Assembly: GCA_029953675.1 (NCBI GenBank)
Contig: JAMWBK010000006.1
Span: 1,674,001-1,738,000 of the forward strand
Direction: 5' to 3'
Length of the DNA stretch: 64,000 nucleotides
Origin: Rhodosorus marinus CCMP1338
Lineage: Eukaryota; Plantae; Rhodophyta
The notes beneath the pieces are model-generated. The model ran no database searches and was not told the DNA's origin. It saw nothing but the letters and a program-made list of their open reading frames with translations. Of this stretch, positions 16,125 through 23,878 are shown in pieces. A program made the translations under genes and the position numbers. Position 1 is the stretch's first letter; every line of letters starts with the position of its first letter.

Positions 16125-17827
16125 ATGACTGTTGGCCAGGCAGTCCTGTACCACTTGGGGAGTTGCGAACAGCTTTGTCATATGTGTTGCATCTGGCCTT
16201 CCTGTCGCTCTTCGCATCGTGAAAAGCTTAACAGCGCTTTCATTATGATGCGTAAACGCGAACTTGTCCGTAGGGAGGTCAAGCTCACCCCAACCGTTCC
16301 AGCCCATCAGCCAGAACTCGATCACGCAAACCTCAGATCTCTACTGGTCCCAACGGAATCGATTTCGCTGATTGTCCACAGATTCCTTCCATTGATCTTA
16401 GCTGTGCCCCACCCTCTTGACAGCTAACTTGATCAGCAGTCTCTTGATCTTGACTGAGTTCGCATTGATTTTACCAAACAAGGGTTTCCAAATACTTGGG
16501 AATGTTCCTCGCCTGCGCCTGCTGAGAACTACGAAGGAGGAAAGCAGCTTGCACGGGTTATTTTTAACGTTCCGAAGAACGTTTCCAAATGTGAGCAGGG
16601 AGGGGCTGTGATGCTGGCAGGTGCCGATGGACCCATCGCGGAGTGTCGTGTTCCATTGCCATGTTCGTCAATTCAGACCTGGGCCGGGAGCAGTTCCTCG
16701 TTCGGCATTGTTGCTCTCTCTGGATCTGAAGCCAGCAGCAGGAGGTCTCCCCGCGGCCATGTGACTCTCGTGGACGTAAAGGGCCTAGCTTTGAACGTGC
16801 GCAGCTGTAAGCTCACAAACGCTCGCGTCCTCGACGGATGCTTGTTTGTTGTGGATTACCGCCTATATCTAGCTGCAGCGGACGCGCAGGGATATTTGAC
16901 AGTTTGGAATTATCTTGCTTTTGACTCTCCACTCAGAGCATGGCAAGCCCATACCGGATCGGTAGGTTTCCTCGACCACGTTCAACAATAAACGGGCGAG
17001 CAAATAACGGAAATTTGCTCTGGAACTGTTCTCCTAAAGGCTGAACGCGTCATTCGCAGACCACGCACCCCATTCCAATGCCTCTCGTGCGGCGGTGACG
17101 GGAAAGCAAGGCTATGGGATGTTCCAAGGGTCACTGAAATCCAAGCTTTCGGGTACGCCGTAACAAACCAGAGCCAACTCGCCCGAATGCTCTGACCCCA
17201 ACACCCTATCCACTCCCCATTCTGATTCTCAGCATAGGACGAGACCATCGACGGGTTGTAACGGACATGGCTTGCAGCCCTGCCGGCGACGCTTTTGGAG
17301 CTACAAGTGGCGAGGAATGCTATCTACTGGACATCCGCAGCAACAGAACCTTGTCGACGATTGGTATAAGGTCCGAAGCTTGCTCATGTGCTTGGAGCGA
17401 AGATGGGTCTACAATCGCCGTCGGAGGTGCGGATGGGGTGCTGGCACTGTTCGACGTACGGATGAGCGGTAACCCTTTTACTGCTGTTCAGACTTTCACG
17501 TACGTAGAAGAAAACTTACAGCTAGACCCCACCGCCAGCCAGACCAGTGCGTGAAGCTCACGAGCTGAAATTTCCTGGTTCCTGTGCAGTGGTAGGATAA
17601 GACGAGTTCGCTGGCATCGTGACAATTTGTTAACCTGCGGACAAGATGCACCTGCTGGAATCTGGAGGCGAGCATCTCAACTAGGAAACAGATTCGTGAG
17701 GACGAAGCTTCTTGACAGTCATCAAGGATGTTTATCGGATGTGGATTCTTTCAGCACTGATAACATTGTGACTTGCGGGTTGGATCGTAGTATGAAGCTG
17801 TGGTCGTATCCAGCAGCAAGAATGTAA
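16125..17827 (+). CDS. WD40-repeat protein, possibly with an N-terminal F-box-like motif
   Basis: WD repeats AHTGSVGFL, IAVGGADGVLALFDVR and SHQGCLSDV...IVTCGLDRSMKLWS. The N-terminal YHLGSCEQLCHMCCIW is loosely F-box-like. Start codon uncertain. Confidence 0.65.
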
Positions 17828-17942: not shown

Positions 17943-19701
17943 TCATTGGAGCTTTCCAACATTCTTCATTACCATAACTCGCGGCTCGGTCATGTCTTCT
18001 ATCGCGTACCGAATTCCTTCACGCCCCAGTCCAGAATCCTTAACTCCTCCATAGGGTTGGGAGTCAACTCGAACTGATGGCACCTCGTTGATAACAACCC
18101 CGCCTGCTTCGATATTCTCAAATGCGAAGAAAGCTTTGTTCACGTTCCGTGTAAAGACGCCCGCCTGAAGCCCAAACCTGGACGCGTTAACACGCTCAAC
18201 TACGTTCTCAAAGTCATCATAAGATTCAATACAGGCTACCGGTCCAAAAACTTCGTTAGAGTAAACGTCACACTGATGAGGAGCATTTTCCATCACCGTC
18301 GCCGGATAGAATCGCCCGTTGCGAACACCGCCACACAGTACCTGACATCGCCAAGGGCCGAGCTATCGTTAGCTACGATTCCGCTTCAAGGCGTGTAGGA
18401 GGCCCAGGCTTGTCTGTTCGTAACGCTCAACCCTCCGTAGCATTTGTGCTGGCATACCTTTCCTCCAGCGGCCTCTGCTTCTTCAACCCATCGCTCCACA
18501 CGGTCAGCTTCTTTTACATCGATCATAGGTCCAATGAATGTAGCTTCGTCCCGCGGGTCTCCCATTCTCAGCTTCTGTGAGGCTGCGACGATCGCATCTC
18601 GAACTCGTCCATAAATGCTAGCATTCACAAAGATCCTTTGAACAGATATGCAGCTCTGTCCAGATTGATAAAACGCGCCATGGATGACTGATTTCACAAC
18701 CGCATCGATGTCCGGTACGACCTCGTCGATGATGCACGCAGCATTTCCACCAAGTTCCAGCGTAACCTGATCGAAAAAACAAACCAGTTTCGGTGCATTC
18801 CTGAGCAAGGCCTCTCGAGTTGTGCGGGCATCTCGCCTGCCATAGTCCAGCGCTCACCTTCTTCTTGCCAGCGCGTTCCTTCATCTTCCATCCGACATCG
18901 GGCGAGCCGGTGAATGAAAGCATCTTGAATCTCGGGTCTACAGTGAAGAGGTCTGCGGATGCTCTGGTACACGGCAGAATAGAAAAGGCACCCGCAGGGA
19001 GCTCTGGAGCTTTCGAAAGGATATCACCAATGATCAGAGCTCCTATGGGTGTTCGGGATGCCGGTTTCATCACGAACGGGCACCCGACTGCGAGAGCCGG
19101 AGCTATTTTATGAGCGGCCAAGTTCAAGGGAAAGTTGAAAGGCGACACCATGGAAATAGCTCCAAGCGGAAAACGTCTCACGATCGATGAAAAGCCTGGA
19201 TCCGAGAGAAACGTTGTAATACTCTGAGCGAGTTTCACATGGGGGGGCACGGCTCGTAGCAGGTGAACAATGATTACCTTCGACTCTAGATGAAATATCA
19301 AGCGGAGCATACTCTCCGTAGATTCTTACTGACTCCTCCGCTGCAATTGTGAAGGTATCGATTAGACGACCAACCTCGCCACGAGCGTCCTTGATCGGTT
19401 TGCCAGCCTCTGCGCAGAGTGCCAACGCTAGCTCTTCGAATCTCTCCTTCATTTCGACTACGGCCCTCTCCAGCACAGCCTTGCGCTTGTAGCTCGGCAT
19501 TGCTGCCATCTGCTTAGATGCTCTGTCTGCCGCAGCAATTGCCTTATCGACAACTGCTTCATCCGCCTGTGCGCATACTGCGTGAACTTCTCCAGTCGCC
19601 TTGTCTATAACCTCAAGGTCCTCATTTGCGAACACCGGTACGTTGCCAAGGTAATATGGATACTTCAGCGGTCCTGTCGAGCCCTTAGGAGCAGCCTGTT
19701 T
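17943..19701 (-). other. ALDH21: ALDH21-family-like (NADP+ succinic-semialdehyde dehydrogenase-like) half of the fusion
   Basis: Close resemblance, from memory, to moss ALDH21: ESVRIYGE.PLDIS, AVGCPFV.KPASRTP, KERAGKKKV.LELGGNA, RVDSQPYGG.KDSG..REG..YA..DM, C-terminal MKNVGKL. Confidence 0.8.
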
Positions 19702-22007
19702 CTATTGGAAACATGTGCAATTGAGTGAAATAGGATACGGCGAAGGGCACAGCCAAACCAAACCAGCTCACCTCCACCTTCACTGGTACGGGGGCCGGGA
19801 CTGCTACTGGTGCTGGTTCAGGTTTCGGCTCTGGCTCCTTATCCATTGGCGCCGGTACCTCCACTGGCTCCCGTGCCACAGGAATCTTGGGCTTCAAGGA
19901 TACCAATTCCTTGACTCTCTCTGCCAGAACTGGGCCGAGAATTTCCGTTGATAGTGTGTAGTCGACCGGGATCTCTACTATGTGGACGCCCTTCAGATTG
20001 ATGACCTTCTCCAGAGTCGGCTCGAGCTCTTCTGAAGAATTGACCCTGTGGCCATGAGCGCCAAAGCTCTCAGCAAGAGCCACAAAGTCGGGATTCACGA
20101 TGCCTGCGCAGCAATTCGTTCTCCTCGCTTAGCTTACGACCAGCGAAGACTCTTAACCAGGGGTACATACCTAAGCCCCATTTTTGGAAACCAGCGGTGT
20201 GCTGTTTCCATTCTATCATTCCGTATGCATTATCGTTAAGGACTATGCACGTCACGTCAATTCCGTGCTCAACAGCTGTGGCAATCTCCTGACTGTTCAT
20301 GGCAAACCCTCCATCACCGCACACCCCGAAGACCTTATGGTCCGGATACTTCAGTTTGACGGCCATGGCGGACGGAAGTCCAGCTCCCATAGTTGCCAGA
20401 GCATTGTCTAACAGCAACGTATTCTGACGATAGGTCTTATACATTCGAGCAAACCTGAAGTTGTTTTTTAGACAGATCCATCCGCAGAGAACCAGTATCA
20501 TTGCTTAGAGTCGCACCAGATAAGGTTCTCTTGACGTGTTTATGGGTCCTTACCAAACCTTGTACATTCCATTGTCAAGACAAACCACGCCATCCTCTGG
20601 CATAGCCTGTCTGATAGCCGCAATTACGCGCTGCGGTGTAAACGGATACCTCGTATCCTGCCAGTGATCAGCAACATGCTTGTCCACAAACTGTTTGACA
20701 GTCATGAACCAGCCGAAATCCCAATGTGGCTGGGGTTCCTTTATCACCTCTTTGATTTGCCAAAGAGCGTTTGCTATATCTCCCACGACATCACAGTGAG
20801 GGAAGTAAACTTCATCCACTTCGCTTGCATAGAAGTTGATGTGCAAAACCTGTTGCCGATCGGCCATTTGACAACTCGGATCAGAACCGGGCCTACGGGC
20901 GGAGCTTAGGTGCTGCGAGGTCGGGTTCCAAGACACGTACCTTGGTTCTGTCATCCCTGTGCATGAAGAAAGGAGGCTTTTCCACAGTATCATGCCCACA
21001 ATTGATGATGAGGTCCGCCTCGTCGGAAGCGCAGTGGACGTAATCATTAGCGGATATAGCTGCTGTCCCAATGAACAGCGGATGCCTCTCGTCGATAACA
21101 CCCTTGCCCTGCTGGGTCGTAATAAATGGTATTCCGAGTGCATCGACAAATTGGCGGAGCGCTCTTGCAGTCCTGGCACGGTTTGCCCCAGCAGCGATGC
21201 AAAGCAGTGGGGATCGAGCCTCGACTATCATTTTCACTGCGGAATCGATCGCCTTCATCTCAGCAATAGCACGACGAACCTACGCGGGATTGGATTATGC
21301 AGAAATATCGATTTAGGATCGACTAAGGTGGGAGGGTTGCACAGATTTTCGGCTCAATGCCCACCGGGAAGACGGGAAACGGCGGATGGTAGGGAACAGA
21401 CTCGCCAGCTATATCCTCCGGAATTTCAAGGTGAACTGGGCCTGGTTTTTCAGTCTCTGCTATCTTCGTTGACCTGCGAACCAAAGATAGCAGCAGTTCT
21501 CCCTCTGAAACCTGCTTGGTGAACTTGCATAGCGGGGTCATCATCTGTACTATGTCGACGATCTGAAAAGATCCCTGTTTTGATGCTCTTATTGGCTTCT
21601 GCCCTGTGATCATCATCATGGGATAGCCTCCTAGCTGAGAATAGGCCGCGCACGTGGTGAAATTGGTAGCTCCGGGGCCCAAGGTACTCAGACAGACGCC
21701 AATCTTTTCAATTGCGAGCAAGGATCCAAATTTTCAGCTGAGAAGAAACAGTTTTTCGCGGGGAGCGTGGCCATAAACAGGCACGACGCACCTTTCCAGT
21801 GACCCGTCCAATCGTAGCAGCCATAAACCCAGCTGCTTGCTCGTGCTTGCATACTACCAGCTTGATTTTCTTGCTCTTTCGAAGGGAATCCAGAACATCC
21901 AGATTCTCCTCACCAGGCAATCCGAACACGAACTCAACGCCCTCGTTCTCCAAGCTTTCAACGAACAAGTCTGAAGCTCGGACCTCGGCTGCCATGGTGG
22001 TCATCAT
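17943..22007 (-). CDS. Fusion protein: ThDP-dependent acetolactate-synthase-like (2-oxoacid decarboxylase) domain + ALDH21-like aldehyde dehydrogenase; 10 exons, roughly 1100 aa
   Basis: All 9 GT-AG introns splice in frame when traced by hand. ThDP part: GLPGEENL, KHEQAAGFMA, GVCLSTLGPGATN, GDGGFAMN...NDNAYGMI. ALDH part: SPFNFPLNL, KPASRTP, SFTGS, LELGGNA, FYQSGQSC, EVFGPV, RVDSQPYGG. The junction intron 19771-19702 gives ...PVKVE|KQAAPKGSTGPLKYPYYLG... Confidence 0.88.
19772..22007 (-). other. ThDP-enzyme half of the fusion (ALS-large-subunit-like) including the Pro/Glu/Ala linker
   Basis: PYR, middle and PP domain motifs as listed for the whole gene; linker PKIPVAREPVEVPAPMDKEPEPKPEPAPVAVPAPVPVKVE. 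Confidence 0.9.
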
Positions 22008-23244: not shown

Positions 23245-23878
23245 CCCATCTCCGACCGAACAGTTATCTCTGCTTCAAATTCGCGCCCTTGGTGCACAAC
23301 TGCGAGAGAGGCCTATGCGATCACGGTCTCAGAGCTCGAAGGCCTGTCTGGAGGACTCCTTCATCGCCAGGATACCACAGAAAGCGAGGCAGCAGCTGTC
23401 GAACAGCGGATCCGCCTAACCTGCCGGTCCTATTCAAAAAACCCTCCCTCGAGGATGTCACCATCACGCCTTTGAGGTCCTGACTCAAGATGCAACGCTC
23501 GAAGATGTAGCCGCACGAGAAATTCGATCGGGACAGGAGCAGGTTGTGCCGCAGTACACTTCTCAGACGTGCAAGAACACTGGACTGTGTGATGTTGTCT
23601 CGGAGACTACTCTGCTTCCACCCTGGTGGAAGGCGACGGGTTGAATCCGTGTCCGAGTAGTAAATTTCAAAACCCCCCAAAGGCAGGTTAGGTTGATGTG
23701 CTGTTCGACAGCCATGGCCTCGCTTTCTGTTATATCCTGGTGACAAGGGAGTCCTCCACACAGGCCTTTTTTTTTCCAGCTCCGAGACCGTGATCGCATA
23801 AGCCTCTCTGGCAGTCGTGCGCCCAAGAGCACAAATTTGATACGGAAACCGAGATAATTGTTCGTGGCGGAGACGGAG
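23245..23878. repeat. Imperfect inverted repeat (arms about 23245-23425 and 23682-23878)
   Basis: The arms align on opposite strands (e.g. GAGAGGCCTATGCGATCACGGTCTC vs GAGAGGCTTATGCGATCACGGTCTC) and translate to related peptides. Confidence 0.85.

Follow-up and report, generated by a model that had tools for sequence, protein, structure and literature searches.

ALDH21 is an "orphan" plant family of aldehyde dehydrogenases (ALDHs) that has so far been read as a γ-aminobutyric acid (GABA)-shunt or stress enzyme. The moss member (PDB 5MZ5, 5MZ8, and 5N5S) is reported to be an NADP+-dependent succinic semialdehyde dehydrogenase (SSADH). In cyanobacteria, a homologue of "acetolactate synthase" (SynPCC7002_A2770, sll1981, MAE_06010) acts as a 2-oxoglutarate decarboxylase and, together with a semialdehyde dehydrogenase, forms a bypass of the tricarboxylic acid cycle, as relayed from Zhang and Bryant 2011 by PMC4224347 and PMC10418658. 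Both parent families of the fusion described here, one of thiamine diphosphate (ThDP) enzymes and one of ALDHs, are reported as homotetramers. The window analyzed here is a stretch of 64,000 nt of the red alga Rhodosorus marinus CCMP1338 (contig JAMWBK010000006.1, positions 1,674,001 to 1,738,000), the genome of which is described in PMC10250338. At window positions 22007-17943 of the minus strand, it carries one nuclear gene for a polypeptide of ~119 kDa, in which a ThDP enzyme forms the N-terminal half and an ALDH of the ALDH21 type the C-terminal half.

The ten-exon model of this gene (1091 residues, predicted mass 119.1 kDa) is residue-for-residue identical to GenBank entry KAJ8904227.1 (P0121) of the R. 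marinus locus NDN08_000752. The second product of this locus, KAJ8904228.1 (P0122, 1089 residues, 118.8 kDa), equals the model with the downstream acceptor of the sixth intron. Public entries of the gene also include A0AAV8USX0, A0AAV8URN8, and A0A7S3EJD2 in UniProt/MMETSP. GenBank, UniProt, and MMETSP already contain the structure of the fusion gene, its two isoforms, and the domain architecture, which are thus known. The database names—"hypothetical protein" or "NADP-dependent glyceraldehyde-3-phosphate dehydrogenase"—are automatic and leave the ThDP half unmentioned. The preliminary description of this locus, made from the DNA letters and a list of open reading frames (ORFs), adds nothing new as gene structure and shows that a reader can recover a fusion that is hidden by a prokaryote-style ORF track. 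The biology of the fusion is of more interest than the junction itself, and a functional hypothesis is the only novel part of the present analysis.

The ThDP half belongs to NCBIfam family NF006187 (PRK08322): the whole protein reaches 778.3 bits, with the cut-off at 509. Second among the NCBIfam families for this half is AlsS at 401 bits, which stays under its own cut-off of 510, and the best PDB match is 13bb with an E value of 1.7e-139. The cofactor-activating Glu56 lies in the motif HEQAAGF, and the GDGG...ND motif extends over residues 443-471 (G443-D444-G445 and N470-D471). Both are invariant or nearly so in an alignment of 16 fused proteins, and Lys395 and Lys480 are invariant across the same 16.

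The two lysines suggest a link of this half to the decarboxylase of Microcystis, MaKGD. Docking of 2-oxoglutarate placed Lys386 of MaKGD (hydrogen bond) and Lys471 (salt bridge) against the substrate (PMC10418658). A constant offset of +9 brings Lys386 onto Lys395 and Lys471 onto Lys480, and the same offset also fits M410, D435, D462, Y465, and Y531; His385, Ala384, and Val382 of MaKGD are not conserved. The motif YG(L/M)IEWK is common to both enzymes. In addition, four peptide tags of the Microcystis enzyme were translated from published mutagenesis primers, and searches with these tags gave cyanobacterial fragments of 52-98 residues, among them fragments with the exact 18-residue Microcystis tag PFVTLIFNDGGYGLIEWK. 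Three tag-bearing fragments score best on NF006187, with 128, 141, and 116 bits compared with 88, 95, and 70 bits on AlsS.

The ALDH half matches Pfam Aldedh (PF00171) with an E value of 3.3e-138 over model positions 7-459 of 461. The catalytic residues Asn764, Glu860, and Cys895 are invariant in the alignment of fused proteins. The top PDB match is moss ALDH21 (5mz5) with an E value of 2.8e-186 and an identity of 56.7% over 483 residues; three Burkholderia ALDH structures (5JRY, 5KF0, and 5J6B) match nearly as well. Arg121, Tyr296, and Arg457 are reported to be the succinate-binding residues of ALDH21 in Kopecna et al. 2017. Their equivalents here are Arg714, Tyr889, and Arg1050—a single numbering offset fits all three in 5mz5—and across the 16 fused proteins both arginines are invariant and the tyrosine is nearly so. 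The two halves are connected by a long, flexible, proline-rich linker, the length and sequence of which vary between species.

These features suggest a two-step reaction within one polypeptide. The N-terminal half would decarboxylate 2-oxoglutarate to succinic semialdehyde, and the C-terminal half would oxidize the semialdehyde to succinate with NADP+. The net reaction would be 2-oxoglutarate + NADP+ + H2O -> succinate + CO2 + NADPH and would bypass 2-oxoglutarate dehydrogenase and succinyl-CoA synthetase. The ThDP enzyme is read as a 2-oxo-acid decarboxylase because a fused ALDH makes sense only if an aldehyde is released. 2-Oxoglutarate is proposed as the substrate because the closest characterized ALDH uses succinic semialdehyde, to which decarboxylation of 2-oxoglutarate is the only simple ThDP route. 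Tethering would keep the reactive aldehyde beside the enzyme that consumes it, and proximity or channeling is a reasonable suggestion for the benefit of the fusion. The protein is probably cytosolic, since its N terminus is not extended in comparison with those of the bacterial homologues. As judged from sequence, confidence in the 2-oxoglutarate-to-succinate chemistry as such is evenly divided; gene structure and this function, taken together as one statement, are held to be somewhat probable.

The eukaryotic fusion corresponds to a self-contained two-gene module that many bacteria possess, so that it is widespread among them. A scan with one genome per species gave at least 597 relatives among the matches listed, and the best 80 loci were examined. 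At 61 of these 80 loci, an ALDH gene comes directly after the ThDP gene, with both on one strand. The two genes are separate ORFs with spacers of mostly 1-60 nt, many of which hold a GGAG-like motif. All-against-all BLAST clustering of the 717 ORFs at the 80 loci yielded no other conserved neighbor of the pair, which makes the ThDP-ALDH pair a self-contained module. The locus of a Pirellulaceae metagenome-assembled genome (L039) has an insert of 862 nt between its ThDP and ALDH genes, and this insert holds an ORF-like stretch.

The bacterial ThDP genes pair with two ALDH subfamilies that share 30-37% identity with one another and separate in neighbor-joining trees (L019-L063 versus L002-L018). 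Partners of the ALDH21-like kind are 56-61% identical to the Rhodosorus half and occur in Alteromonas, Caballeronia, Sphingomonas, and others, as well as in all eukaryotic fusions. Partners of the second kind are 30-37% identical and occur in Arcobacter, Bacteroidota, Methylophaga, and the fused proteins of Obscuribacter. The ThDP halves are 52-61% identical in nearly all proteins compared, with one metagenome protein at 45%. Different bacterial lineages may handle different aldehydes. The two genes share a reading frame in 30 of 49 bacterial pairs, many of which are interrupted by nothing but one stop codon (L002, L005, L008, L022-L026, L043, L054, and others). Read-through or recent fission was considered for this excess and rejected in favor of a probable ranking bias of the best-scoring tblastn matches: a match that crosses one in-frame stop scores higher, and the same-frame loci cluster at the top of the list.

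Among eukaryotes, this fusion is ancient and has been conserved. The complete set of four Pfam domains (TPP_enzyme_N, _M, _C, and Aldedh) occurs in at least 70 protein clusters; these derive from red algae, green algae (Ostreobium, Bryopsis, Coccomyxa, and Elliptochloris), a streptophyte alga, liverworts, ferns, and the labyrinthulid Hondaea, and include bacterial clusters. In the neighbor-joining tree, the ALDH halves of eukaryotes group as one clade. The whole fusion of Hondaea fermentalgiana is encoded by one uninterrupted ORF of 1153 codons without introns. In Riccia sorocarpa, one exon covers residues 559-730, from the end of the ThDP enzyme domain across the whole linker and on into the ALDH part, and in Coccomyxa an intron lies three residues before YPYYL, that is, before the ALDH domain. 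These comparisons gave no evidence for a conserved "fusion intron": Riccia has none at the junction, and Hondaea is intronless. The fusion is conserved across eukaryotes; the position of the intron is not. The moss Physcomitrium patens has a homologue with the ThDP part only (L081, CM009341.2; isoforms of 604-626 residues). No ALDH gene was found within 10 kb of it, and the idea that moss ALDH21 adjoins this gene was rejected. The pair has been split or duplicated in mosses, while liverworts and ferns keep the fusion. The well-studied ALDH21 that stands alone therefore represents one partner of a pair that is kept fused in other plants.

Several points weigh against the proposed 2-oxoglutarate chemistry or the gene on which it builds. 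NCBI gives NF006187 the title "acetolactate synthase large subunit." The family link to the cyanobacterial enzyme rests on fragments of 85-98 residues that are 39-48% identical to Rhodosorus. The ThDP-pocket motif around the V-conformation Met reads SNGFAAMG in the Microcystis enzyme and DNALATMG in Rhodosorus. The substrate contacts of the two lysines derive from docking with a predicted structure, neither from a crystal structure nor from mutagenesis. The cyanobacterial SSADH partner is not a relative of ALDH21 and is absent from the top 60 PDB matches of the ALDH half. The RNA support for splicing comes from other strains (95% identical) and not from the sequenced strain. A literature search found no enzymatic assay of this protein or of any fused homologue.

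The first and third of these points bear on an alternative in which the fusion is real and its chemistry different. In this case, the ThDP half would act as a decarboxylase on some other 2-oxo acid, for example pyruvate, hydroxypyruvate, or 2-oxoadipate, or would be a carboligase such as acetolactate synthase, and the ALDH half would oxidize the matching aldehyde or serve in unrelated detoxification. Catabolic acetolactate synthases are also the next-best families and structures of the ThDP half, the best NCBIfam match of the ALDH half is archaeal lactaldehyde dehydrogenase (426 bits, below the cut-off of 650), and the two bacterial partner subfamilies are compatible with an aldehyde that varies. 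The carboligase form of this alternative is opposed by the adjacent or fused ALDH, which has a use only where an aldehyde is set free. AlsS releases no aldehyde, and we know of no AlsS that is paired with an ALDH. A different 2-oxo acid is opposed by the reported use of succinic semialdehyde by the closest characterized ALDH, the conserved Arg/Tyr/Arg equivalents, and the invariance of the two lysines that are proposed to bind 2-oxoglutarate at its distal carboxylate. A different chemistry is considered possible, if rather unlikely; the same logic with a different 2-oxo acid takes most of the probability that the 2-oxoglutarate chemistry leaves.

The two halves are joined by removal of the sixth intron, a spliceosomal GT-AG intron that lies in the linker. 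On the minus strand, the sequence across the junction reads AAGGTGGAG/GTGAGCTGG...TTTCCAATAG/AAACAGGCTGCT, or in a fuller stretch CCAGTGAAGGTGGAG/GTGAGCTGGTTTGG...CACATGTTTCCAATAG/AAACAGGCTGCTCCTAAGGGC, with slashes at the splice points. In a six-frame translation, the frame of the ThDP enzyme enters intron 6 and halts at the TAA at 19687-19685, and the ALDH frame opens at 19701. The mechanical ORF list accordingly gives two separate ORFs (19685-20098 and 19108-19635), as the preliminary description had pointed out. It had joined them by a phase-0 intron of 70 nt leading from APVPVKVE to KQAAPKG without a stop, and this intron is present at the positions proposed, with its donor GT at 19771-19770 and its acceptor AG at 19703-19702. 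Exons 1-6 total 1806 coding nucleotides, so that a whole codon precedes the donor. The spliced frame ...APVPVKVE/KQAAPKGSTGPLKYPYYLGNVPVFANEDLEV... is stop-free and opens with KQAAPKG.... The same source had held that the ALDH half lacks an ATG of its own until well inside the domain and that no intergenic space is left for a promoter. Both statements are borne out: the earliest ATG of the ALDH frame (...RASKQM, 19509-19507) encodes residue 667 of the fusion, 38 residues within the Aldedh match that starts at residue 629, and the two coding parts are separated by just 70-76 nt.

The sequence of the junction by itself is permissive. Enumeration yields 32 distinct GT-AG combinations of 40-150 nt that join both domains in one stop-free frame, and an in-frame, stop-free GT...AG pair at this place is not beyond chance. 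For this reason, the sequence alone neither proves splicing nor fixes the junction; both are settled by homology and transcript evidence. Among the enumerated pairs, GTGAGC at 19771 is the sole donor that resembles the other donors of the gene. The other eight introns have lengths of 67-116 nt, are all GT-AG, and end in CAG in six of the eight cases. A candidate branch-point stretch, CACTCAAT, lies ~20-28 nt upstream of the acceptors of intron 6. The acceptor itself is one of a tandem pair, TAG/AAACAG/, spaced 6 nt apart (19696-19703), and the use of the downstream AG (19697-19696) yields an intron of 76 nt. Both are used in the deposited annotation, and their products differ by Lys-Gln in the linker.

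Transcript-derived proteins come from MMETSP assemblies of two other R. marinus strains (~95% identical). They include the full-length fused products P0124 (1086 residues) and P0125 (1088 residues) and three further partial products that cover the junction (P0001, P0123, and P0133). In all five, the junction reads VKVE/AAPKG or LKVE/AAPKG, without KQ, and the transcripts hence favor the downstream acceptor. The single fused transcript of the preliminary description stands, supported both by these spliced products and by the intronless junctions of Hondaea and Riccia. Its choice of acceptor holds in part: the KQ form is one deposited isoform, whereas all five transcript-derived proteins use the acceptor 6 nt downstream. 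A fused relative of 74% identity (P0002) is encoded on a contig of 3.7 kb. P0001 ends in ...GGKVFQHKSYGGLRA (intron 9, 18342-18457) and P0123 in ...KKKVGS (intron 8, 18767-18857), both being peptides of retained introns; the MMETSP assemblies of this gene therefore contain incompletely or alternatively spliced isoforms. P0133 departs after ...LIDTFTI, within exon 7.

Such isoforms enter a second alternative, that of two independent genes: the junction would normally stay unspliced, a protein with the ThDP part only would end at the TAA in intron 6, and the ALDH would arise from a separate transcript starting at the Met codon at 19509. The many in-frame GT-AG combinations leave room for a chance pair, MMETSP secondary ORFs that begin with MAAMPSYK... 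(P0131 and P0132) possibly stem from intron-retaining isoforms, and Physcomitrium does have separate, unlinked ThDP-only and ALDH21 genes. Nevertheless, every one of the five transcript-derived proteins covering the junction is spliced and fused, an ALDH starting at Met667 would miss the first 38 residues of its domain, the short spacer leaves no room for a promoter, and in other eukaryotes continuous ORFs or exons encode the fusion. Two independent genes are very improbable, and the locus almost certainly holds one genuine fused gene. An artefact in which unrelated loci were merged during assembly or annotation can be dismissed with near certainty, since the same architecture recurs in independent genome assemblies, transcriptomes, and metagenomes of many lineages, the window contains the linker together with the two domains in a single unbroken stretch, and no support for such an artefact was found.

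Table 1. Positions of the fusion gene and its parts in the window.
Feature	Position	Strand	Remarks
Complete fusion coding region	22007-17943	minus	10 exons, 9 GT-AG introns of 67-116 nt; 1091 residues
Exons 1-5	22007-21792, 21703-21365, 21279-20941, 20849-20554, 20454-20171	minus	
Exons 6-10	20103-19772, 19701(19695)-19278, 19195-18858, 18766-18458, 18341-17943	minus	
ThDP half (residues 11-536)	19970..21977	minus	Introns 1-5 inside; Pfam TPP_enzyme_N, _M, _C; NF006187
Inter-domain linker (~residues 545-616)	19663..19945	minus	Rich in Pro/Ala/Glu/Lys; holds intron 6; alignment columns ~640-790
ALDH half, ALDH21 type (residues 629-1080)	17979..19623	minus	Introns 7-9 inside; Pfam Aldedh, PDB 5mz5
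Intron 6, form of the preliminary description	19702..19771	minus	70 nt, phase 0, GTGAGC/CCAATAG, VKVE/KQAAPKG; matches the 1091-residue GenBank isoform
Intron 6, downstream acceptor	19696..19771	minus	76 nt, AAACAG, VKVE/AAPKG; matches the 1089-residue GenBank isoform and the MMETSP proteins
First ATG in the ALDH frame (residue 667)	19507..19509	minus	Sequence and Pfam
TAA ending translation on retention of intron 6	19685..19687	minus	Would leave a ThDP-only protein ending in ...VKVEVSWFGLAVPFAVSYFTQLHMFPIETGCS

Two further features flank the gene. The plus strand carries exon-like ORFs with weak WD40/beta-propeller matches at 16608-17827. The last of these ends at 17827, only 115 nt away from the fusion gene's stop codon (17943-17945); the genes converge, and their 3' untranslated regions probably overlap. 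Approximately 1.3 kb upstream of the start codon of the fusion lies an inverted repeat (23291-23425 / 23682-23823) with arms of ~135-140 nt that are 83-88% complementary in two collinear segments.

A wider reading extends the proposed chemistry to all eukaryotic fusions. In red, green, and streptophyte algae, liverworts, ferns, and labyrinthulids, the fused proteins would be single-polypeptide 2-oxoglutarate decarboxylase/SSADH enzymes that form a cytosolic, NADPH-yielding bypass of 2-oxoglutarate dehydrogenase in the manner of cyanobacteria, acquired as a bacterial two-gene module and then fused, and ALDH21 would be the split-off half of this enzyme. This wider reading is put forward tentatively, with somewhat less than even confidence. 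If true, the chemistry would explain what ALDH21 is for and would point to a second way in which algae and early land plants turn 2-oxoglutarate into succinate. No open paper that treats ALDH21 together with an acetolactate-synthase-like partner was found.

Compared with the deposited products KAJ8904227.1 and KAJ8904228.1, the gene of the window shows no difference: it is the same gene, with identical proteins and both choices of acceptor. AlsS (PDB 1OZF and 4RJI) shares with the ThDP half the same three-domain ThDP fold and the cofactor motifs but scores far lower, with 401 compared with 778 bits on NCBIfam and 269 compared with 469 bits on PDB. ALDH21 of Physcomitrium patens has the same catalytic Glu and Cys and the same Arg/Tyr/Arg equivalents as the Rhodosorus ALDH half; it is a stand-alone protein, whereas the Rhodosorus ALDH21 domain makes up the C-terminal part of a fusion protein. 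In the cyanobacterial system, a decarboxylase is paired with an ALDH as in Rhodosorus, and both decarboxylase parts are acetolactate-synthase-like ThDP enzymes. The cyanobacterial pair, however, consists of two separate proteins, Rhodosorus has one polypeptide, and the cyanobacterial SSADH is not of the ALDH21 type, so that the analogy holds for the ThDP half only.

The bacterial module, as found in Paraburkholderia, Alteromonas, and Sphingomonas, has the same gene order as the fusion, and both of its halves are 52-61% identical to Rhodosorus. It consists of two ORFs parted by a stop codon and a ribosome-binding site and not of one polypeptide. Fused bacterial proteins do exist: the named members of the two largest bacterial four-domain clusters examined are mostly Candidatus Obscuribacter or Obscuribacterales. 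These fusions (~1016-1054 residues) have the same domain order and a ThDP half that is 55-58% identical to that of Rhodosorus. They differ in a much shorter linker and in an ALDH half of the other partner subfamily, which is 33-35% identical. Because of this ALDH half, the Obscuribacter fusion was rejected as the ancestor of the eukaryotic one, and the bacterial and eukaryotic fusions are therefore independent; the joining of this ThDP enzyme to an ALDH has arisen at least twice.

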